A stretch of DNA of 64,000 nucleotides from Bacillus subtilis subsp. subtilis str. 168 (GCF_000009045.1 NC_000964.3:1178001-1242000), one strand, 5' to 3'. Shown: positions 757 to 12,005, counted from the first letter of the stretch. A program made the numbers and translations. The notes: generated by a model from the sequence alone, not told the origin.

Positions 757-2595
757 TTAATGCAAAAAGATATTTTGGCGCTGCTCATCTTTTTGCTGAA
801 TATATGATGTGAGCTCAGCGGTTAAGTCAGATCTGAGGAAAGGCGTTATCAAGTAGATGCCGTTAAACAGCTCGCATGCCGTATCCAGCAGGGAGCGTGC
901 AATTGCAAGGCCTTCCGCCTTTTGCTTTTCTTTATCTTCACCGGCATGGGCCATTTTTTCGCGAATCGTATCAGACAGCTTAATGCCGGGAATTTCATTA
1001 TGGATGAATTCGGCATTCCGGCTGCTTGTCAGCGGCATGATGCCGATATAGATCGGCGTCTTCAGATGTTTTGTTTCGTTATGGATATCGACAAGCTGCT
1101 GCTCGGAATAGACAGGCTGAGAAACAAAATAATCTGCGCCGCAATCTATTTTTTTCTCAAGCCGTTTTACCGCTTTATCCAGATGGCGGACGTTAGGATT
1201 AAATGCGGCGGCAACTGAGAAATTCGTTTTCTTGCCGAGCGGTTTTCCAGACAGAGACAGACCTTCATTGAATTGTTTGATCAGCCTGATTAAATCAAAA
1301 GATGTTAAATCATATACAGACGTCGCCCCAGGAAAATCCCCGATTTTAGAAGGGTCACCTGTAATAGCAAGCACGTCATTCAGCCCTAACGTATCAAGGC
1401 CCATTAAATGTGACTGTAAGCCGATAATGTTACGGTCACGGCACGTAATATGGACAAGGGAACGCATATCGAGCTGCTGCTTGACAAGGGCGCCGCAGGC
1501 AACATTGCTGATCCGCGGGGTCGCCAAAGAATTGTCGGCGAGTGTCAGGGCATCGATTCCCGCTTCTTTTAATTCAGCAGCAGCGGACAGAAATTTGTCA
1601 AAGCTTAGTTTTTTCGGCGGGTCCAGCTCTACGATAATAGAGCGTTTTTTCGCTGCGATCTCATCCAGGCCGGGCTCGGTTCGCTCGTGATGAACAGAAA
1701 TGAATTCTTTCGCCCGGGTTTTGACTTCTTTTTCCGTAATCGGAGCCAGCCCGCCAACCGCTTCCGCCATCGCCCTGATGTGATTCGGCGTTGTGCCGCA
1801 GCAGCCGCCGATAATCCGCGCACCTTGCTTACGGAATTCTGACGCGCTGTTTTGAAAATACGTGTCGTCTGTTTCATAGACGAGCCGTCCCTCTTCAAGC
1901 GAAGGAAGACTGCTGTTCGGATAAACGGATAAGAATACGTCATCAAAAATCGGCACTTCGCTTAGCGCTTCAATCATGTGATAAGGGCCGAGGCGGCAGT
2001 TAATGCCGACAATATCAGCTCCGAGATCCGCAATCGAGCGCAATGCGTCAGAAAGCGGCGTTCCGTCCTGCAATACGCCTTGCTCGTGCATGGAGACATT
2101 GAGCATAATCGGAAGATCAGTCTCTTTGCGCGCGATTTTCAGCACTTCACGGGCTTCTTCCAAATCATAATATGTTTCTAACAGCAAGCCATCCGGCTCT
2201 TCATGCAGCAGCAGATACAGCTGCTCGCGGAAGCTGCGCTTAATTTCGTCAAGACTGTATGCGTTTTTATTAAATGTGCGTATGCCGCCCATCGTTCCAA
2301 GCACGTATGCATCGCCTGCTGAAGCCCGCGCGATCTTTACGGCCTCCTGATTCATTTTTTTGATGTCATCCTCAAGCCCGTGTCTGGATAATTTAATATA
2401 GTTGGCTCCGTACGTATTCGTTTGAATAATGTTGGCTCCCGCTTCAACGTACGCTTTATGTATGCGCTGAATTTCCTCCGGCTTTGAAATATTGAGCTCC
2501 TCAAAACACCTGTCAATGCCATAGGAGTAGAGGAGCGTCCCCATGGCGCCGTCACCGATTAACACCTGTCTTTGCAAATCTTCTAAAAGTCCCAT
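757..2595 (-). CDS. yitJ: Bifunctional homocysteine S-methyltransferase / 5,10-methylenetetrahydrofolate reductase
   Basis: 612 aa; DGAMGT, GINC and GGCCGTTP Zn-thiol motifs in the N-domain; MTHFR-like C-domain ([20 protein letters not shown]); SAM riboswitch upstream. Confidence 0.95.
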
Positions 2596-2635
2596 TGTCT
2601 GCCTCCTTTATTCACATCAGCAAGGAAAAAAGAGA

Positions 2636-2808
2636 AATAAAAAAAGTCCTCTTAAGAAGAAGACTTTGTCAGTGATTTTGTCTCTTCTTATCTTCCAAGC
2701 TGTTCGAGCTTGCTGGATTTAGCACCTTGGTCATGGCTGATCGCCATTACACCGGTTGCTGAAGCTTCGTCGGGCCAGTCCCTCTGCTTCTCTTGATAAG
2801 AACGGATA
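2636..2808 (-). promoter_or_regulatory. SAM-I (S-box) riboswitch with intrinsic terminator, yitJ leader
   Basis: Minus strand TTCTTATCAAGAGAAGCAGAGGGACTGGCCCGACGAAGCTTCAGCAACC...GGTGCTAAATCC...GATAAGAA; P1 halves at 2795-2802 and 2685-2692; terminator AAAGTCTTC..GAGGACTTTTTT at about 2636-2667. Confidence 0.97.
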
Positions 2809-2908
2809 TGAAATTTTCGTGTCAGGAAGTGCCAAAAGATATCTGGCGTTTTTCCCTTTCTCCAAATTTACCGAAAATAAAGACAATAATCAATAGGAAT
2901 CAGAAAAT

Positions 2909-3400
2909 TTATCTGAAATTTATAAATTGAACGTCAATTGGCAGATCTGCTCCCCGTACAGCTGAGATAATCTGCTGCAGGTCATCTTTGTTTTTTCCGG
3001 TGACACGCACTTGATCATCCTGCACCTGAGACTTTACTTTCAGTCCGGAGTTTTTGATGATCGTATTGATTTTTTTTGCGTTGTCCTTGTCAATGCCTTG
3101 AACAAGCTTTGCACGCTGGCGCACCGTTCCGCCTGACGCGTTTTCAACCTTGCCGTAATCAATGTTTTTTGTCGGTACGTTTCGTTTAATCAATTTGCTG
3201 ACCAGCACATCTTTCAGCTGGCTTAATTTGAATTCGTCATCGGAAACGAGGACCAGCTCCTCTTTATCTAAAGAAATGTCGCTTTTGCTGCCTTTAAAGT
3301 CATATCGGGTACTGATTTCCTTCAGTGCGATTTGGATTGCGTTTTGCACTTCAGGCAATTCCACCTTGGATACAATATCAAATGAACTTTCTTTTGCCAT
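2909..3400 (-). CDS. yitK: YajQ-family nucleotide-binding protein
   Basis: 163 aa; [29 protein letters not shown] YajQ signatures. Confidence 0.92.
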
Positions 3401-3434
3401 ATGAAAACCTCCATAACATTTAACTTATGTGTTG

Positions 3435-3463
3435 ATTATAGTAGAATAAAGAGAAACTTCCAA
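3435..3463 (-). promoter_or_regulatory. sigma-A promoter for yitK
   Basis: Minus strand TTGGAA-N17-TATAAT. Confidence 0.55.
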
Positions 3464-3546
3464 CAGAACAAAGAATCAATTTGTGATGATTGGAAAAAAT
3501 GTTAACAAAATCCGCAGAGAATAAGCGGAACAGGAAGGACGATAGC

Positions 3547-4395
3547 ATGAGACCAGGGCAGCAATTAACCTTGAGTATAGATCACCAAACCGACTTCGGT
3601 TACTTTTTAACCGATGGGGAAGATACGATTCTCTTACATAACAGTGAAATGACTGAGGATATCGAGGACAGAGACGAAGTAGAAGTCTTTATATACGTAG
3701 ACCAGCAGGAAAGGCTTGCGGCCACGATGAAAATTCCGATCATCAGCGCGGATGAATATGGCTGGGTTGAAGTGGTGGATAAAGTGGAAGATATGGGCGT
3801 TTTCGTTGATGTCGGTTTATCGAAGGACGCACTAGTCGCAACTGAGCATTTGCCGCCGTACGAAGATGTCTGGCCGCAAAAAGGGGACAAACTTTACTGT
3901 ATGCTGAAGGTGACGAACCGGGGGCGCATGTTTGCGAAACCAGCGCCGGAAGATATCATCAGCGAACTGTTTACCGACGCTTCAGAAGATCTGATGAATA
4001 AAGAGCTGACAGGTACGGTGTACAGGCTGATCGCATCGGGTTCATTCGTGATCACGGATGACGGTATCCGCTGTTTTATTCACCCGTCAGAAAGAAAAGA
4101 GGAGCCAAGACTGGGTTCAAGAGTCACAGGCCGGGTGATTCAAGTGAAAGAAGACGGTTCAGTCAACTTGTCGCTGCTTCCGAGAAAACAGGATGCAATG
4201 TCAGTTGATGCTGAGTGCATTCTAACGTATATGAGAATGAGAAACGGTGCCATGCCGTACAGTGACAAAAGCCAGCCTGACGATATCAGAGAACGTTTTA
4301 ATATGAGCAAAGCCGCCTTTAAACGCGCGCTGGGCCATTTGATGAAAAACGGAAAAGTGTATCAGGAAAATGGATGGACATACGAGAAAAAATAG
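3547..4395 (+). CDS. yitL: CvfB-family S1-domain RNA-binding protein
   Basis: ORF 3490..4395; ATG 3547 follows AGGAAGGA (upstream ATG 3499 also possible); repeated S1-like segments and C-terminal SKAAFKRALGHL winged-helix. Confidence 0.88.
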   Translation: MRPGQQLTLSIDHQTDFGYFLTDGEDTILLHNSEMTEDIEDRDEVEVFIYVDQQERLAATMKIPIISADEYGWVEVVDKVEDMGVFVDVGLSKDALVATEHLPPYEDVWPQKGDKLYCMLKVTNRGRMFAKPAPEDIISELFTDASEDLMNKELTGTVYRLIASGSFVITDDGIRCFIHPSERKEEPRLGSRVTGRVIQVKEDGSVNLSLLPRKQDAMSVDAECILTYMRMRNGAMPYSDKSQPDDIRERFNMSKAAFKRALGHLMKNGKVYQENGWTYEKK

Positions 4396-4399
4396 CATG

Positions 4400-4444
4400 A
4401 AAACGGCTCGCCTGCAGCAGACTGCGGAGCGAGCCGTTTTTTTA
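4400..4444. terminator. Bidirectional intrinsic terminator between convergent yitL and yitM
   Basis: AAAACGGCTCGC...GCGAGCCGTTTTTTT hairpin. Confidence 0.85.
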
Positions 4445-4447
4445 TGT

Positions 4448-5032
4448 CTAGTTTAATTCATCAACCAGCGTTCTGATTGCCATTTCGCGATCCACATTGT
4501 CTGAAATCGCAATCGGCGTAATATCAATGGCGAGAATGATCAGAATCAGGGCACCTGCTGCAGCAACATAAGAAACATAATAGAAATAGTTAGCGGTATC
4601 AACAGTGTTGACAAGCTCGGCCTGAACTCTGGATGTATCATCCTTAGAAGCGGCGATTTCCTTTGCAGCTTCTACTTTTTCTTCAACGATTTGACCTGCT
4701 TTTTTCAGCAGTTCATCCACTTTCAATGCATCTTTGCTGTAAACAGCTTTCTTCAGGTTATCAAAAAAGTCAGCATCCTCTTTTTTAATATCAGCGACAA
4801 CCTGATTGGCAAAAGCCTTTGCCTGTTTTGTGTTGAGTTTGTCTGTCATCGCTTTATTAAAGACCTCTGGAAGCTGTTTGCCAACTTCCCCTTGGGCAAA
4901 CACAAAGCCTTTAAAAATTTCCTCACCTGAATACTCAAGCTGCTTTGCCTGTGCCACACTTTCTTGCTGCTTCACCAAAAACACAGTCGTCACCAATACA
5001 ACCGACAAAAATACTAGAAACGCCTTCTTCAA
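4448..5032 (-). CDS. yitM: SdpC-family secreted peptide-toxin precursor (YIT toxin)
   Basis: 194 aa, TTG start with SD GAAGGGAG; signal peptide (VAQA/K); SGEEIFKGFVFAQGEVGK resembles the SdpC pro-region; hydrophobic C-terminal core; TTG overlaps the yitO TGA. Confidence 0.9.
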   Translation of the reverse strand: MKKAFLVFLSVVLVTTVFLVKQQESVAQAKQLEYSGEEIFKGFVFAQGEVGKQLPEVFNKAMTDKLNTKQAKAFANQVVADIKKEDADFFDNLKKAVYSKDALKVDELLKKAGQIVEEKVEAAKEIAASKDDTSRVQAELVNTVDTANYFYYVSYVAAAGALILIILAIDITPIAISDNVDREMAIRTLVDELN

Positions 5033-5958
5033 ACTGAAACCTCTCCCTTCTTGTGTTTTTTATTCCACAACAGTCTGCGAATATATGTAAATTGAATCGT
5101 GGAATCGATAGGAGTGAGATACAATATCAAAATGCCGGCCATGATAATCGAAAAACTGATGAGGCCCAGCATGACTGCAAAAATCTCATGCATAAAAACA
5201 GCGATGATCAAAATCAATCTCCAATGCTTCTTCGGCGCAAACAGTGCCGCGAAGATGACAATTTGAACCAGCAGCGTCCCCCATGTCGGAATCACCACGA
5301 ACGGACTTGTTACAATTGGCTTCGTTAACGCCTGAAAAAAGCCGTTGAAGCCAATGGTTTTTTCCTGGGCGAAATAATAGACGGCCGTTCCGTCCACCCA
5401 TTCCTGCTGAGATAGCTTAGCGACGGTAGAGTGAAAATAAAGCACCGCCACTTGGATTCTGATCACAAAATAAGAAATAAAAGCTGTTATTTTTCCAAGT
5501 GTTCTTTTGCCCTCTATAGGTCTCGTACTCCAATGCCATTTTCTCGGATCGGTCAGCGTGATGGGAAGCAATAAAAAGGTCATGACTGCTGCTGCCTGCT
5601 CGCCTCCGTCGATGACGATCAGCGATGACTGCAGGCTGTAACTGACATACCAATGCAGAACCCCGGTGATTCTGGGGCGCCAGCCAATGACAACAAGCAC
5701 CAGAATGGCAATGCAGACCCATCTGAAAAGATTTAACATCATATAGTTATTTTCGCCGAGACAAAAGAGACTGAGATTCATTTTACAAGCTGGATAGCTG
5801 CTGATCCCGCTGGCTGGCTTCATAATGAGGCTCGGGTGATTGATGAGCAGCGTCAGCAGGCTGGATAGCGCAATGATGCTTCGCGCGAGGCCATATACAT
5901 TTGTCCACGGGTTTCTTTCGTCCCATCTGGTGATGGTCTGTTTTATGTTTTCGAGCAT
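5029..5958 (-). CDS. yitO: SdpB-family membrane maturation protein (HTTM / vitamin K-dependent carboxylase-like)
   Basis: 309 aa multi-TM; IDGGEQ and YFHSTVAKLSQQEWVDG motifs. Confidence 0.88.
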   Translation of the reverse strand: MLENIKQTITRWDERNPWTNVYGLARSIIALSSLLTLLINHPSLIMKPASGISSYPACKMNLSLFCLGENNYMMLNLFRWVCIAILVLVVIGWRPRITGVLHWYVSYSLQSSLIVIDGGEQAAAVMTFLLLPITLTDPRKWHWSTRPIEGKRTLGKITAFISYFVIRIQVAVLYFHSTVAKLSQQEWVDGTAVYYFAQEKTIGFNGFFQALTKPIVTSPFVVIPTWGTLLVQIVIFAALFAPKKHWRLILIIAVFMHEIFAVMLGLISFSIIMAGILILYLTPIDSTIQFTYIRRLLWNKKHKKGEVSV

Positions 5959-6479
5959 GAGATCACAACCTTGACTATGCTTTTTACCTGATAAGACGAA
6001 GGGGTATATTTAGAATAGCTCCAAGGAACAATATCCTCTTTCGTCAAATAGTAGCTGCCACAAAGCAGCGGGCGGGGAGCGGGTGTTTTTAATTGCACGG
6101 TTTTGGCTTTGCTTTTGCATGCGCCGAGGTCCTTTTCTTTACATGCTGTCCACTGTTCCTTGCCGACTTGGCTGTAGATCACGCCCATTTCAACGCCTTG
6201 TGACCGCCCATACCGATACAGGCCGAATAGGTTGTCAGCCCTCATATTGGGCCATCTGACCTTGGCGCTGGCATTTTCAGCCTCATATAAGCCGATTGCA
6301 GTATCACGCGGATTTTTGCTAAAAAAGCCCCAGCCCTGAGGGAGGATGCTGGACATGAGAAATTTGGAGTCCTTTGTCAGCGGAATCGGGGTTGTCCCTA
6401 AGCTGCCAATAATAGAAAACAGAAATAGCGAACCCCAAAGGATTGAAAAAATGACAAAAAATGATATCGATTTCTGCAT
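5943..6479 (-). CDS. yitP: SdpA-family maturation protein (178 aa)
   Basis: Start moved to ATG 6479 (SD AAAAGGAG); N-terminal TM, PQGWGFFSKNPR motif; overlaps yitO start. Confidence 0.88.
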   Translation of the reverse strand: MQKSISFFVIFSILWGSLFLFSIIGSLGTTPIPLTKDSKFLMSSILPQGWGFFSKNPRDTAIGLYEAENASAKVRWPNMRADNLFGLYRYGRSQGVEMGVIYSQVGKEQWTACKEKDLGACKSKAKTVQLKTPAPRPLLCGSYYLTKEDIVPWSYSKYTPSSYQVKSIVKVVISCSKT

Positions 6480-6656
6480 TCGACTGCTCCTTTTAACCTG
6501 AAGAATCGTTTTTACACTTTTCATAATATAAAAACATTTATGTAATAAAAAGGTTAAAAAGTATGAGAAATTCCATTTTTGTTAAAAGGAAAAACAGGAC
6601 ATTTTACACTGCTATATGTGATTGATATATAGTGTTTTTTTCGATATATTTAAACC

Positions 6657-7004
6657 ATGAAAACGAATCAAGTTAATGACCGCTGGATTGTTCAATTTCG
6701 AAAAGGGATTTTCGAGCTGGCCATCCTATCCCTTCTGCGTTCTAAACCGATGTACGGTTATGAGCTGACGTCATCCTTAAAAACCACCTCGGCGCTGGCT
6801 ATTTCAGAGGGAGCGATTTATCCGATTTTGAAACGTATGACCGAGAAGGGATGGATCGAATTTTTTTGGGAAGATTCACTGGACGGCCCGAAAAGAAAGT
6901 ATTACAAAATGACGCAAAAAGGAGAAGAAATGTTAAAAGAACGGCTGGAGAAATACCTGGAAACCCATCAAGCCTTACTGTCTTTATCGGGGGATTTGCT
7001 ATGA
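6657..7004 (+). CDS. yizB: PadR-family transcriptional regulator
   Basis: 115 aa; [39 protein letters not shown]; ATGA overlap with yitQ; no obvious SD. Confidence 0.9.
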
Positions 7005-7588
7005 ATGGACAGCTTATCATTGACCGATACATGGAGGAACTAAATGCAGAGCTGGCGAATATGCCTGATGTAGAGAGAGAAAACGCTATCGACGAATTAA
7101 AGGGGCATATCACCGCTTTCGTTCAAGACAGAATCAAAGCCGGCCTTAGTGAAGAGGAACTGCAGGAAGCTGTTGAATCTGAATTTTCTCATCCGAAGGA
7201 GCTTGCCGAATTGATGATGGGTGATGGGGGAGAGACGAAAAGGAGGAGGTCTTTATTGGGCAAAAGCTGGATTTCGGTCCTTCTCATTGTCACGATTATC
7301 GCCCTGCCGCTGCTGCCGTCCGACTTCAGACATCTGCCGCTGGCTGTTTATTTAATGGTGCTCGCCGGATATGTATGGAAGCGGAAAAAATTGGTGATGT
7401 TTGCAGGTGTCAGAAAAAACAAAATGCGCTCTCAAAAGGAGATTGTCAAGATTTCGCGAGTCGGTGCGGTTTATCTGCTGTTTTTAGCAGTGGTGCTCCT
7501 TTTGAGCCCGTTCCTCAATGCGCTTGTCGTCCTGCTGCTGATTGCAGTAAGCTGCGCCGCTTTTTTTCTTTTTCTTAACATCAAGTAA
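7001..7588 (+). CDS. yitQ: Membrane immunity protein: N-terminal HAAS-like helical domain plus about 4 TM (195 aa)
   Basis: Start at ATG 7001 overlapping the yizB stop; [12 protein letters not shown]...AIDELKGHI...GLSEEE...[10 protein letters not shown] followed by hydrophobic segments. Confidence 0.85.
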
Positions 7589-7607
7589 TCTTGTAGGAGG
7601 CTGTAAG

Positions 7608-7901
7608 ATGGAAATCAGCATCAATTATCTATTAATTGTCATCGCGCTTTTATTCTTTGTGGTTGCCTATTTTGTCGGAATCAAAAAACAAACCTGGATG
7701 TTGGCTGGGTTTAACGAGGCGCGTATACGGGATAAAGATCGGCTGGCCAGAATAGCAGGCTACTTTTTCTTGAATTCCGGTTTGTTCATTTTGCTGAATA
7801 GTTTTATCTCATTTCAAGGTCAGGAGCAGCTCATACCTCCGCTTATACTGGCATATGGAGCAGGGGTTATTATTTATGTCAATAAAAAATTAGTAGAGTA
7901 G
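7608..7901 (+). CDS. yitR: Small 3-TM membrane protein (DUF3784-like)
   Basis: 97 aa, SD AGGAGG; WMLAGFNE resembles the DUF3784 LIAGYN motif. Confidence 0.85.
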   Translation: MEISINYLLIVIALLFFVVAYFVGIKKQTWMLAGFNEARIRDKDRLARIAGYFFLNSGLFILLNSFISFQGQEQLIPPLILAYGAGVIIYVNKKLVE

Positions 7902-7942
7902 AAAAAGAAGGGCAGAGCGAAATATCTCTGCCCTTCTTTTTT
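7902..7942 (+). terminator. Intrinsic terminator of yizB-yitQR
   Basis: AAAAAGAAGGGCAGAG-N8-CTCTGCCCTTCTTTTTT. Confidence 0.85.
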
Positions 7943-8036
7943 GGGAAAATAAGAACGAAGCACCACATACAAGTTTTTGTATTTTTGATAGGATGAAGAA
8001 AAATGGTAGATTCCAAAATAGGAAGGATGTGGTGTT

Positions 8037-9653
8037 TTGCGCAACTTGACCAAGACATCTCTATTACTGGCCGGCTTATGCACAGCGGCCCAAATGGTTT
8101 TTGTAACACATGCCTCAGCTGAAGAAAGCATCGAATACGACCATACGTATCAAACCCCTTCATACATCATCGAAAAGTCACCGCAGAAGCCGGTACAAAA
8201 CACAACCCAGAAAGAATCGCTATTTTCCTATCTTGACAAGCATCAAACGCAGTTTAAGCTCAAAGGGAATGCGAACAGCCATTTTCGCGTTTCGAAAACC
8301 ATAAAGGATCCAAAGACAAAACAAACGTTTTTTAAATTAACGGAGGTTTACAAAGGAATTCCGATTTACGGCTTTGAACAAGCGGTCGCGATGAAGGAAA
8401 ACAAACAAGTGAAAAGTTTCTTTGGAAAGGTGCATCCGCAAATCAAGGACGTCTCCGTCACACCGTCTATTTCTGAGAAAAAAGCAATACATACAGCAAG
8501 GCGTGAGCTCGAGGCTTCCATTGGAAAAATCGAATATCTTGATGGGGAACCAAAAGGCGAATTATATATCTATCCACACGACGGTGAATATGATCTCGCC
8601 TACCTTGTGAGACTCTCGACATCTGAACCTGAGCCTGGCTATTGGCATTATTTCATCGATGCCAAAAACGGAAAGGTCATCGAGTCCTTTAATGCCATTC
8701 ATGAAGCGGCAGGTACAGGAATCGGCGTGTCAGGTGATGAAAAAAGCTTTGACGTCACAGAACAAAATGGGCGCTTTTATTTGGCTGACGAAACAAGGGG
8801 AAAAGGGATCAATACATTTGACGCGAAGAACCTGAACGAAACCTTGTTTACGCTTTTGTCTCAACTGATCGGGTATACGGGCAAAGAAATAGTCAGCGGC
8901 ACGTCCGTATTTAATGAACCTGCGGCTGTAGACGCACACGCAAATGCGCAAGCCGTTTACGATTATTACAGCAAGACATTTGGCCGTGATTCTTTTGATC
9001 AAAACGGAGCAAGGATTACGTCTACCGTGCATGTCGGCAAACAATGGAACAATGCTGCGTGGAACGGTGTCCAGATGGTATACGGGGATGGAGACGGTTC
9101 GAAATTTAAGCCGCTGTCTGGATCGCTCGACATTGTCGCGCATGAAATCACACACGCAGTCACACAGTATTCCGCCGGTCTTTTATATCAAGGAGAACCC
9201 GGTGCATTAAATGAGTCCATTTCTGACATTATGGGCGCGATGGCTGACCGTGATGATTGGGAGATCGGCGAAGATGTCTATACTCCTGGTATTGCAGGAG
9301 ATTCATTGCGGTCATTGGAGGACCCATCTAAGCAGGGAAATCCAGATCATTACTCGAACCGCTACACAGGAACAGAGGATTATGGCGGAGTCCATATCAA
9401 TTCGTCCATTCACAATAAAGCAGCTTATCTTCTTGCAGAAGGAGGCGTGCACCACGGTGTACAGGTTGAAGGGATTGGGCGTGAAGCAAGTGAACAAATT
9501 TACTATCGGGCTTTAACATATTATGTAACGGCATCTACAGATTTCAGCATGATGAAGCAAGCGGCGATTGAAGCTGCCAATGATTTATACGGTGAAGGCT
9601 CGAAGCAATCAGCTTCAGTCGAAAAGGCGTATGAGGCTGTCGGCATTCTATGA
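8037..9653 (+). CDS. nprB: Extracellular neutral metalloprotease B (M4/thermolysin family preproenzyme)
   Basis: 538 aa; signal + FTP/PepSY propeptide; NNAAWNG, HEITH, GALNESISD, GGVHINS. Confidence 0.97.
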   Translation: MRNLTKTSLLLAGLCTAAQMVFVTHASAEESIEYDHTYQTPSYIIEKSPQKPVQNTTQKESLFSYLDKHQTQFKLKGNANSHFRVSKTIKDPKTKQTFFKLTEVYKGIPIYGFEQAVAMKENKQVKSFFGKVHPQIKDVSVTPSISEKKAIHTARRELEASIGKIEYLDGEPKGELYIYPHDGEYDLAYLVRLSTSEPEPGYWHYFIDAKNGKVIESFNAIHEAAGTGIGVSGDEKSFDVTEQNGRFYLADETRGKGINTFDAKNLNETLFTLLSQLIGYTGKEIVSGTSVFNEPAAVDAHANAQAVYDYYSKTFGRDSFDQNGARITSTVHVGKQWNNAAWNGVQMVYGDGDGSKFKPLSGSLDIVAHEITHAVTQYSAGLLYQGEPGALNESISDIMGAMADRDDWEIGEDVYTPGIAGDSLRSLEDPSKQGNPDHYSNRYTGTEDYGGVHINSSIHNKAAYLLAEGGVHHGVQVEGIGREASEQIYYRALTYYVTASTDFSMMKQAAIEAANDLYGEGSKQSASVEKAYEAVGIL

Positions 9654-9701
9654 GCAAACAAAAACAGTCAGGACACAGAGTCTGACTGTTTTTGTTTGCT
9701 C
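9652..9701. terminator. Bidirectional terminator nprB / yitS
   Basis: GAGCAAACAAAAACAGTCAG...CTGACTGTTTTTGTTTGCTC. Confidence 0.8.
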
Positions 9702-10551
9702 ATTTTCTTAAAAAGAATATCGCCAATGTACCTGGACCGGCATGCGAGCCGATGGCTGAACTGATTGGATGCATAATGATTTCTTTCGGCTTGAACGCTT
9801 CCTCAATCAGGTGTTTCATATCCGTGGCTTTTTCTTTGTTCGCGGCGTAGCTAATCCCGACGGTTTGATTGCTCCAATCATCCCCGCGCTCTTTCATAAG
9901 CTCGATGATCCGTTTGAAAAGTTTCTTCTGTCCGCGAATTTTTTCCAGAGGCACAAGCTTGCCGTCCTCCATCTGAAGCAGCGGTTTAATATTCAACAGG
10001 CCGCCGACAAAAGCGGACGTTTTGGATATCCGGCCGCCCCTCGCGAGATATGTTAAATCATCAACGGTAAAAATGTGTTCAAGCTGGCTGCAAAAGTTCT
10101 TTACAGACGTTTCAATTTCTTGTATTGTATTCCCGTTGATACAGAGATCGGCAGCATGCCGGACAGCCAGACCGTATCCTAATGAAGCGCATTTGGAATC
10201 AATGACCCGCAAATCGAAATCGGGGAATTCCTCCTTCACTTCATTGGCGATCATTACAGCTGTCTGATACGTGCCGGAGAGACCTGAGGAAAAGGCAATG
10301 TAAAGAGCGGGATCACCTGTTTCGGCATATTGCAAAAACACATTTTTAATCGTTTGCGGTGAGGCTTGGGACGTCTTAGGCGTTTCTCCATTTTGCATCG
10401 CTTCAAATATTTGATCCGCATGAATTGTGACTGCATCTTCGAATTCTTTATCGCCGAGAGAAACCCTGAGCGGAATAAAGCCAATGCCTTTTTCTTCAAA
10501 ATAAGAACGAGGCAAATCAGTGGCGCTGTCAGCGATGAGATGAACTGTCAT
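9700..10551 (-). CDS. yitS: DegV-family fatty-acid-binding protein (283 aa)
   Basis: Start ATG 10551 (SD GAAGGGA); [28 protein letters not shown]. Confidence 0.92.
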
Positions 10552-10629
10552 ATTGCTTCCCTTCTTTCCGTTATCGCTCGTTATCATGAGAGTTAAGCCA
10601 ACTATATCATATTAATTTGCCAAAATCGT

Positions 10630-10654
10630 GTTCAAATATTTGTTTTAAGGGAAA
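10630..10654 (+). promoter_or_regulatory. sigma-B-type promoter for yitT
   Basis: GTTCAA-N13-GGGAAA. Confidence 0.6.
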
Positions 10655-10688
10655 ACATAATAAAGAAGAAAGAGCGGAGGAACATGCC

Positions 10689-11531
10689 ATGGTACTAGAT
10701 CAAACAAAAAAATTACTCATCGTCATCATCGGCGCTTTACTCAATGCTGCCGGGCTGAACTTATTTTTGATACCTGCAGATGTATATGCCAGCGGATTTA
10801 CAGGTGTTGCCCAGCTTTTATCAAGCGTCGTTGATCAATATGCCCCCTTTTACATATCGACGGGAACGCTCTTGTTCCTCTTAAACATTCCGGTCGGTAT
10901 TTTAGGATGGCTGAAGGTCGGCAAATCGTTTACAGTGTACAGCATTTTAAGTGTCGCACTCACTACTCTGTTTATGGGGATCCTGCCGGAAACAAGCCTG
11001 TCACATGACATTTTGCTGAACGCGGTGTTCGGCGGCGTCATTTCCGCAGTCGGTATCGGCTTAACATTAAAATACGGAGCTTCGACAGGCGGGCTTGATA
11101 TCGTCGCCATGGTACTTGCAAAGTGGAAGGATAAACCCGTCGGCACGTATTTCTTCATTCTGAACGGGATTATCATCTTGACGGCAGGATTATTGCAAGG
11201 TTGGGAGAAAGCATTATATACCCTGGTTACACTATATGTGACAACGAGGGTGATCGACGCCATTCACACTCGCCACATGAAGCTTACGGCAATGATTGTG
11301 ACGAAAAAAGCGGACGAAATCAAGGAAGCCATTTACGGAAAAATGGTGCGCGGCATCACAACTGTTCCGGCAAAAGGAGCATTTACGAACGAACAGAAAG
11401 AAATGATGATTATCGTCATCACGAGGTATGAACTGTACGATTTAGAAAAGATCGTCAAAGAAGTTGATCCAAAAGCATTTACGAACATCGTTCAAACGAC
11501 AGGGATTTTTGGTTTCTTTAGAAAAGACTGA
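10689..11531 (+). CDS. yitT: YitT-family membrane protein (DUF161 + DUF2179), 280 aa
   Basis: Start ATG 10689 after GCGGAGG; GFTGVAQ, STGGLDI; C-terminal DPKAF domain. Confidence 0.92.
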   Translation: MVLDQTKKLLIVIIGALLNAAGLNLFLIPADVYASGFTGVAQLLSSVVDQYAPFYISTGTLLFLLNIPVGILGWLKVGKSFTVYSILSVALTTLFMGILPETSLSHDILLNAVFGGVISAVGIGLTLKYGASTGGLDIVAMVLAKWKDKPVGTYFFILNGIIILTAGLLQGWEKALYTLVTLYVTTRVIDAIHTRHMKLTAMIVTKKADEIKEAIYGKMVRGITTVPAKGAFTNEQKEMMIIVITRYELYDLEKIVKEVDPKAFTNIVQTTGIFGFFRKD

Positions 11532-11549
11532 CGAAAGCAGGTGGAAGTC

Positions 11550-12005
11550 GTGAAACGGCTGCTTGTGATGCTCCTCCCCGTGCTGCTTTTGATAGGCTGC
11601 GGGAAAGATGAGCAGACAGAACCCGATAAGGAGGTATCAGGCGGAATGGAGAATCAAGAGGTTGTTTTATCTATTGACGCAATTCAGGAGCCTGAACAAA
11701 TCAAGTTTAACATGTCGCTGAAGAACCAAAGCGAACGTGCTATTGAGTTTCAATTCAGCACAGGGCAAAAATTTGAACTTGTCGTGTATGATTCTGAGCA
11801 CAAAGAAAGATACCGTTATTCGAAAGAAAAAATGTTTACGCAGGCTTTTCAAAACCTGACGCTTGAATCTGGAGAAACATATGATTTCTCTGATGTGTGG
11901 AAGGAAGTCCCTGAGCCCGGAACCTATGAGGTAAAGGTGACATTTAAGGGCAGGGCGGAAAATCTCAAGCAGGTTCAGGCTGTTCAGCAGTTTGAAGTCA
12001 AATAA
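11550..12005 (+). CDS. ipi: BsuPI proteinase inhibitor; long form with lipoprotein signal (GTG 11550, 151 aa) and short form (ATG 11646, 119 aa)
   Basis: [25 protein letters not shown] BsuPI motifs; both starts have an SD; lipobox LIGC at codons 14-17. Confidence 0.85.

Follow-up and report, generated by a model that had tools for sequence, protein, structure and literature searches.

Which proteins shield a cell of Bacillus subtilis from the YIT toxin, and to which signal does the regulator of these proteins answer? Both questions are raised by the stretch of DNA described here, a window of 64,000 nt from Bacillus subtilis subsp. subtilis str. 168 (NC_000964.3:1178001-1242000), in which positions 4448-9653, counted from the first letter of the window, hold the toxin operon yitPOM, the divergent operon yizB-yitQ-yitR and the protease gene nprB. 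As a whole, this segment is best explained, with high probability, as the B. subtilis YIT toxin, immunity and protease locus. The locus is already known and belongs to textbook-adjacent B. subtilis biology, for which no new claim is needed. The additions made here are incremental and consist of a corrected start for yitP, an architecture for YitQ, the linkage of YitQ and YitR, a candidate operator and the distribution of the module outside B. subtilis. These comparative results make two questions that have been open since 2019 directly testable, namely YitR as the missing half of immunity and the signal perceived by YizB.

The system was described by Kobayashi and Ikemoto in 2019, who identified yitPOM as a paralogue of sdpABC that makes a secreted toxin (PMC6818787). 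The secreted activity was demonstrated for the operon as a whole, with no single-gene dependence given, and the toxin sequence is stated to be "not yet determined" (PMC6818787). It was also reported that yitPOM and nprB are turned on in biofilms by DegS-DegU, that yizB-yitQ-yitR is not DegS-DegU-induced, that YitQ gives specific resistance, and that NprB is needed for toxin action inside the biofilm matrix (PMC6818787). An earlier note on this DNA, made from the sequence alone, had named the known YIT locus with DegS-DegU induction, YitQ immunity and a matrix role for NprB, and the paper says the same. Gene set and gene order are identical to those of the YIT locus of strain NCIB3610, with no difference in the locus itself, and the published transcripts, yitPOM with 2031 bp and yizB-yitR with 1244 bp, match the present coordinates in size (PMC6818787). 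The encoded proteins are 99-100% identical to products named as B. subtilis proteins, and all seven open reading frames (ORFs) were recovered from the window where the note had placed them. A search by gene name of the literature from 2019 on returned no follow-up on the YitM peptide, YitQ, YizB or YitR, and two later papers do no more than cite the system, in agreement with the note's remark on the peptide, YizB and YitR.

The immunity operon: YitQ and YitR

The ATG of yitQ shares the sequence ATGA with the stop codon of yizB. YitQ carries an N-terminal, cytoplasmic HAAS domain (33.7 bits against a cutoff of 27, E 4.6e-8), and YitR is a DUF3784 protein (PF12650; 52.9 bits against a cutoff of 28.1, E 4.3e-14, model positions 1-92 of 94). 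The C-terminal half of YitQ aligned with YitR in hhalign (97.4%, E 1.2e-11), and a tblastn query with YitR also matched the C-terminal half of YitQ homologues. YitQ orthologues give full-length DUF3784 matches at E 1e-3 to 1e-5, which lie below the cutoff and, where precomputed, are marked "weak". When 1.84 billion representatives were searched with a YitQ profile, free DUF3784 proteins matched its C-terminal half, and only 13 full-length clusters were obtained at E<=1e-30. On the basis of the hhalign alignment, the sub-threshold orthologue matches and the free DUF3784 proteins found with the profile, YitQ is predicted to be a HAAS protein with a DUF3784-like membrane domain, a member of a small family, and YitR the free-standing paralogue of that domain. 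Against this architecture it must be said that the window YitQ has no direct Pfam DUF3784 match, that pairwise BLASTP of YitQ with YitR is weak (E 0.005), and that membrane proteins inflate profile scores. YitQ and YitR as divergent forms of SdpI (PF13630) were also considered, and this idea was rejected as neither protein matched at E<=1.

The partnership of the two proteins is a constant one among the lineages examined. A DUF3784 gene lies directly after the YitQ-like gene in 11/11 lineages, four orphan operons included, and a PadR gene accompanies the YitQ-like and YitR-like genes in all eleven, four of which have no toxin genes. In the B. subtilis group the ratio of nonsynonymous to synonymous substitution rates (dN/dS) is 0.015 for yitR and 0.22-0.25 for yitQ, which is the fastest. 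YitQ leaves "weak halos", that is, it protects partially, and SigW contributes to YIT resistance (PMC6818787). In the published work only yitQ was tested for resistance, and YitR was set aside since the natto strain BEST195 keeps yitR (PMC6818787); the yitQ::cat allele used there could be polar on yitR. Because of the linkage in every lineage, the low dN/dS and the partial protection by YitQ alone, YitR stands out as a candidate for the other half of the immunity. Together, YitQ and YitR would act as a membrane receptor that neutralises the peptide. The earlier note had spoken of a complete system: its genes are confirmed, YitR has to be added as the constant partner of YitQ, and the linkage to nprB is not general.

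The control region and the regulator YizB

YizB is a short PadR winged-helix regulator (79.8 bits, PF03551 E 1.5e-22), and orthologues about 60% identical head the same operon in other genera. In B. stercoris D7XPN1 (L001 in our numbering of homologous loci, 8014-8376) its C-terminus is divergent after residue 103. The control region between the two operons is conserved in seven B. subtilis group genomes. On the yitP side it shows a -10-like TATATT at 6530-6525 on the minus strand with a poor -35 element. On the yizB side, the -10 box of the promoter-like site ends 6 nt before the ATG, with no Shine-Dalgarno (SD) sequence, and the same promoter-ATG geometry is found in Fictibacillus (L007, L008, L010), in Melghirimyces (L011) and in L028. 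Since the box lies so close to the ATG, an SD is lacking and the geometry recurs in other lineages, the yizB mRNA is probably leaderless.

The -35 box of this promoter is overlapped by a 21-bp imperfect palindrome at 6612-6632, in which eight of ten pairs are matched; it is unique in the window, where 0.01 such sites are expected by chance. The palindrome is conserved upstream of yizB in L001-L006 of the B. subtilis group and in Melghirimyces, and related palindromes stand upstream of the yizB homologues of Fictibacillus (GTATCATTGATAC/T) and L028. It is a candidate for the YizB operator, through which YizB would repress its own, probably leaderless, operon.

With regard to the signal, the HAAS domain of YitQ might couple the status of the membrane to YizB. 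HAAS-PadR dyads are defined by a HAAS protein encoded next to a stand-alone PadR gene, and here the PadR gene is directly upstream with an ATGA overlap. Such pairs were put forward as an alternative to two-component systems and as general envelope-stress sensors, and the physical relay of a membrane signal from HAAS to PadR is a proposal only (PMC11237479). A relay from YitQ to YizB is plausible in view of these proposed dyads and of the ArsR/SdpI pairs present at the SDP-type loci L012 and L013.

Distribution of the module and orphan immunity operons

The distribution was followed by a genome scan with a YitM alignment and then by tblastn of all window proteins; context look-ups added further lineages. 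In six more B. subtilis group species, synteny extends over the entire locus. Homologues of yitP, yitO and yitM together with those of yizB, yitQ and yitR were found in three species of Fictibacillus, in Bacillus sp. JJ1764, in Melghirimyces algeriensis and in L028 and L031. In Fictibacillus and JJ1764 the six genes share a strand, and Melghirimyces has two divergent operons as in the window. The other loci from the YitM scan are SDP-type or belong to Bacteroidota. A natto-like "empty" site was sought via the exact YitR protein, and all ten places returned were full loci.

Orphan operons of PadR, YitQ-like and DUF3784 genes, with no sdpABC nearby, occur in L029 (7643-8892), L030 (5679-6950), L032 (6347-7723) and L033 (7507-8760). 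Two of them come from Bacillus massiliglaciei and Paenibacillus ginsengihumi, the other two (L032 and L033) from uncultured contigs. These orphans bear on the question of who resists whom in mixed Bacillales biofilms.

In several loci outside B. subtilis, the place after yitR is taken by genes for a DCC1-like thiol-disulfide oxidoreductase, a YhfC intramembrane metalloprotease or both. Both are present in Fictibacillus, L028 and L031; JJ1764 has DCC1 only, and Melghirimyces and L033 have YhfC only. Among SDP-type loci, L013 has both and L012 DCC1 alone. Neither gene is present in the window.

On the contig L028, whose GC (guanine plus cytosine) content is 34%, the YIT-type module at 1108-11667 is complete and comes with an NprB-like protease, DCC1 and YhfC; its neighbours are an integrase and a Tn3-family transposase, and it has the look of transposon cargo. 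The module of L031 is flanked by a resolvase. Because of these recombination genes the YIT module is regarded, from its gene context, as mobile. YIT-type toxins are not a peculiarity of B. subtilis and form a small family in mobile contexts.

Some features of individual loci were recorded in addition. In L028 the interval from the protease to sdpA contains a secreted 124-aa ORF (2848-3222). In Melghirimyces (L011) the yitM homologue (9917-10488) and YhfC (6237-6976) are each split in two frames, either by decay or by assembly error. Genes for tetratricopeptide repeat (TPR) regulators of the Rap/RNPP type closely precede the toxin operon in Fictibacillus (L007 7147-8241; L008 and L010 likewise) and in L031 (2908-5470), the latter beside a 60-aa ORF, and Melghirimyces has a helix-turn-helix TPR gene (L011 4194-5519) about 3 kb from its toxin operon, beyond the immunity operon. 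This gene context suggests quorum-sensing control elsewhere, where B. subtilis uses DegU.

Alternative explanations and the place of nprB

The reading of YitR as half of the immunity competes with a simpler one, by which YitR is an unrelated small membrane protein that is merely on the shared transcript. Natto BEST195, which lacks yitPOM, yizB, yitQ and nprB and keeps yitR, speaks for it and does not fit an obligate YitQ-YitR pair, and yitQ is the sole gene whose effect on resistance was assayed there (PMC6818787). The constant position of the DUF3784 gene in toxin-bearing and orphan operons alike, the paralogy of YitR with the YitQ membrane domain, the very strong purifying selection on yitR and the weak halos left with YitQ alone all argue the other way and make this explanation very unlikely. 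Considerably more weight belongs to the possibility of a passive role of YitQ in immunity, with YizB as an ordinary autorepressor responding to a toxin-unrelated signal, such as stationary phase or general envelope stress, and no relay between the two. Even in a degU mutant, where yitPOM is silent, the yizB-yitQ-yitR transcript goes up in stationary phase (PMC6818787). The toxin is thus not needed for that induction; some other signal must exist, and the toxin may be none. A simple toxin-triggered circuit in the style of SdpI/SdpR was downgraded on account of this Northern result. The role of general envelope-stress sensors proposed for HAAS-PadR dyads (PMC11237479), together with the orphan PadR-YitQ-YitR operons of genomes without an adjacent toxin operon, favours the passive role as well. 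It is opposed by the translational coupling of the PadR and HAAS genes and their co-inheritance with the toxin operon across genera, and an orphan immunity operon would gain from induction by a foreign toxin. In addition, parallel SDP-type loci pair a repressor with an immunity protein that is said to sequester it, as Ellermeier et al. reportedly found in 2006. The explanation without a relay is a serious one, to which we give somewhat less than even weight.

Similar considerations apply to nprB. The note had pointed to a secreted M4 protease next door, and the FTP, PepSY, Peptidase_M4 and M4_C domains encoded at 8037-9653, with HEITH at residue 369 and GALNES at residue 389, place the product in that family; it is 99% identical to "neutral protease NprB [Bacillus subtilis]" (NCBI). 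The note had further held that a lack of co-conservation of nprB would tell against its reading of the locus, and on this point the evidence is divided. An NprB-like protease adjoins the module in two of the seven toxin-bearing lineages, the B. subtilis group and L028, and no M4 protease was found within 8-10 kb of the module in the other five (Fictibacillus with its three species, JJ1764, Melghirimyces and L031 among the loci concerned). These absences favour a mere neighbour, by which nprB would encode a general exoprotease under DegU control that lies beside the module by chance and did not evolve as a component of it, and so do the DCC1-like and YhfC genes that occupy the slot after yitR in those loci, the promoter-like site and terminator that nprB has of its own, and the operon terminator between yitR and nprB. 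Conversely, genetics show that YIT needs NprB to act in biofilms, and natto BEST195 is devoid of nprB as well as of yitPOM (PMC6818787). On L028, an unrelated contig of low GC, an NprB-like M4 protease, 54% identical, is encoded at a distance of about 650 bp from the sdpA homologue in the YIT-type module, and in a 28-sequence maximum-likelihood tree of M4 proteases the two module-linked enzymes are sisters (ultrafast bootstrap 92, SH-aLRT 97), both being on long branches and L028 deviant in composition. Among the NprB relatives seen outside the B. subtilis group, none exceeded 57% identity. The statement that nprB is simply not co-conserved was softened after the L028 protease and its placement in the tree; that nprB is just a neighbour is unlikely, and it is better described as a lineage-restricted accessory of the cassette than as a universal part.

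On a broader view, YizB-YitQ-YitR may be a self-contained mobile immunity unit, with YitR as an essential co-receptor of YitQ, that circulates with YIT-type toxins and as orphans; the ancestral cassette would also have contained an NprB-type M4 protease and the DCC1-like and YhfC genes, of which B. subtilis kept only the secreted protease. This picture is offered tentatively, as one that is more probably wrong than right.

The toxin operon: precursor and maturation proteins

YitM, YitO and YitP each exceed the NCBIfam curated cutoff of their family, as toxin_SdpC (TIGR04032, 171 bits against 99, E 1.5e-50), SdpB (TIGR04033, 244 bits against 178, E 2.2e-72) and SdpA (TIGR04034, 218 bits against 53, E 4.9e-65; PF17418 E 1e-36), respectively, and their three genes are adjacent, as in an SdpABC operon. 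The ATG of yitO lies inside yitP, with an overlap of 16 nt, and yitM starts with a TTG whose TTGA is common with the stop of yitO. By these overlapping stop and start codons the three genes are translationally coupled, in agreement with the note, which had described three coupled SdpA-, SdpB- and SdpC-like genes. The longest ORF for yitP is 5943-6524. Its SdpA family stands, and its start is to be moved: the ATG at 6479 is preceded by the SD AAAGGAG at 6493-6487, between-species indels in 6480-6524 are not multiples of three, public gene calls give YitP 178 aa, and the ATG at 6524, which opens the longest ORF, comes directly after the -10-like TATATT. Because of the SD, the non-triplet indels upstream and the public 178-aa calls, 6479 is taken as the true start by sequence criteria.

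YitM is laid out as a Sec signal peptide (about residues 1-28), a helical N-domain, a hydrophobic core (about 149-180) and a C-terminal tail (about 182-194). Its hydrophobic segments by hydropathy are residues 1-23 and 149-180, and it has zero Cys. The layout of signal peptide and C-terminal hydrophobic segment is common to 11 family members in the alignment, the cleavage of YitM being predicted only. In the AlphaFold2 model, 31-128 and a helix at 179-193 are confident and the core is below 50, with an overall predicted local distance difference test (pLDDT) score of 63.6. The alignment of the SdpC family from Bacillales and Bacteroidota shows a conserved N-domain motif, YSGEE(I/L)FKG, and a conserved C-terminal tail, (R/K)E..(I/V)(R/K)..(L/I), with a variable hydrophobic core between them. 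Within the YIT type, core and tail are well conserved in Fictibacillus, Melghirimyces and one uncultured lineage, and in the B. subtilis group yitM has a dN/dS of 0.03, i.e., strong purifying selection. We infer a recognition or chaperone role for the two conserved flanks and would place the excised toxin at about residues 146-180; weighing against this, the boundaries of the mature peptide rest on hydropathy and conservation only. By analogy with SdpA and SdpB acting on SDP, YitP and YitO would excise or mature the YitM core into a membrane-active peptide.

Two side observations concern this operon. SdpC-SdpA-SdpB homologues in C-A-B order occur in Bacteroidota (L014-L017: Spirosoma, Riemerella, Xanthocytophaga and Cyclobacteriaceae), and their SdpC homologues have the same conserved precursor N-motif and C-tail. 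Between B. subtilis group species, the synonymous divergence (dS) of yitPOM (window 4448-6479) is about 0.30 against 0.46-0.58 for yitJ, yitK and nprB, which could reflect interspecies recombination or codon bias.

YitP has a single N-terminal membrane helix, and its AlphaFold2 model reached a pLDDT of 72.9. Foldseek against the PDB gave no fold match (best E 0.38 for YitP and 4.6 for YitM) and profile searches of PDB sequences gave nothing for either protein, after which the structural route to SdpA and SdpC function was dropped. YitO is a polytopic membrane protein whose profile matches the GGCX transmembrane domain (query 133-275 against GGCX 172-305). K181 of YitO (window 5416-5418), near-invariant in the SdpB family, is aligned with K218 of GGCX, which is known as the proposed catalytic base of vitamin K-dependent gamma-carboxylase. 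To our knowledge, no evidence exists for carboxylation. An LMF1 match of YitO reached 21 bits, below the cutoff of 27, and a weak precomputed HTTM match is recorded for the L028 homologue. These matches make a weak but coherent case that YitO is linked to the HTTM/vitamin K carboxylase superfamily, and the low strength of the GGCX match (E 3.3e-4) counts against it.

Layout of the locus

The features of the locus, and the accessory genes of homologous loci, are collected in Table 1. In line with the note, housekeeping genes border the locus, with yitJ, yitK and yitL at one end and yitS, yitT and ipi at the opposite end. In B. stercoris D7XPN1 yitK is split over two frames (L001 11633-12120). 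The terminator of the divergent PadR and two-membrane-protein operon, an operon which the note had recognised and whose domains were all found, is a hairpin at 7901-7942 of -26.1 kcal/mol (z -5.5), an end point that agrees with the published 1.24-kb transcript (PMC6818787). The hairpin at 4400-4446 has -31.8 kcal/mol on the plus strand (z -6.6) and -26.7 on the minus strand (z -5.4), that at 9653-9700 has -34.3 kcal/mol (z -9.9), and all three carry U-tracts. Because of its loop and T-run rules, a scan for consensus terminators did not pick up those of yitM and yitR, and folding recovered both. The GC content of the locus is 0.37-0.49 and that of the flanks 0.40-0.52; composition was dropped as an island signal since these ranges show no clear contrast.

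Table 1. Coordinates of the YIT locus in the window and of accessory genes at homologous loci (the latter in the numbering of the locus named)
Feature	Position	Strand	Description and basis
Bidirectional intrinsic terminator	4400..4446	both	common to yitL (+) and yitM (-); folding
yitM	4448..5032	-	SdpC family, TIGR04032, 194 aa
yitO	5029..5958	-	SdpB family, TIGR04033, 309 aa
yitP	5943..6479	-	SdpA family, PF17418 / TIGR04034, 178 aa from corrected start
Divergent control region	6480..6656		between yitP and yizB
21-bp imperfect palindrome	6612..6632		CTATATGTGATTGATATATAG; candidate YizB operator; overlaps -35 TTGATA at 6622-6627
yizB promoter-like site	6622..6650	+	TTGATA-17-TATATT; scan, 10/12 matches
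yizB	6657..7004	+	PadR, PF03551, 115 aa
yitQ	7001..7588	+	HAAS + predicted DUF3784-like membrane domain, 195 aa; ATG 7001
yitR	7608..7901	+	DUF3784 membrane protein, PF12650, 97 aa
Terminator 3' of yitR	7901..7942	+	folding
nprB promoter-like site	7985..8012	+	TTGATA-16-TAGATT, extended TG; scan
nprB	8037..9653	+	precursor of the secreted neutral protease B, M4 (thermolysin-type), 538 aa
nprB/yitS convergent-gene terminator	9653..9700		20-bp stem and folding
DCC1/YhfC genes	L007 11961-13215		
DCC1/YhfC genes	L008 11954-13184		
DCC1/YhfC genes	L010 12266-13408		
DCC1/YhfC genes	L028 6727-7920		
DCC1/YhfC genes	L031 8928-10140		
DCC1/YhfC genes	L013 6825-8050		
DCC1-like gene	L012 10576-10965		

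Comparison with known systems

The closest known relative is the sdpABC-sdpRI system. YIT shares with it the SdpA, SdpB and SdpC families, a precursor built of signal peptide, conserved N-domain, hydrophobic core and C-tail, and a pair made up of a small winged-helix repressor and a membrane immunity protein, which occupies the same positions. The repressor is of the PadR type in YIT (YizB) and of the ArsR type in SDP (SdpR), and the place of SdpI is taken by a HAAS + DUF3784 protein plus a free DUF3784 protein. True SdpR/SdpI pairs, ArsR with SdpI, stand at the SDP-type loci L012 and L013, whereas the window has a PadR regulator and, in YitQ and YitR, no SdpI match. The SDP peptide reportedly contains a disulfide (Liu et al. 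are said to have described it in 2010). The C141-C147 disulfide of SDP is impossible in YIT, and the Cys pair at the start of the core that marks SDP proper is missing, as YitM is Cys-free. The YIT operons are divergent, and YIT is under DegU whereas SDP is under Spo0A. SDP is a processed, unmodified 42-residue peptide, SdpC C141-S182, and no cross-immunity exists between YIT and SDP (PMC6818787).

The immunity operon resembles the HAAS-PadR dyads in that a stand-alone PadR gene lies directly upstream of a gene for a multi-pass membrane protein with an N-terminal HAAS domain (PMC11237479). It differs from them in the DUF3784-like membrane domain of YitQ with its free DUF3784 paralogue, in the canonical GxP kink, which is SHP in YitQ, and in being tied to a peptide-toxin operon and not to Psp/Lia envelope-stress genes.

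The weak likeness of YitO to the GGCX/HTTM superfamily lies in the alignment of the membrane domain and in the K181/K218 pair, and YitO lacks the lumenal domain. Abi/CPBP-type intramembrane proteases are immunity partners at bacteriocin loci. A comparable position is held outside B. subtilis by YhfC, after yitR or beside sdpABC, with a putative role, and in the window this slot is occupied by the secreted M4 protease.

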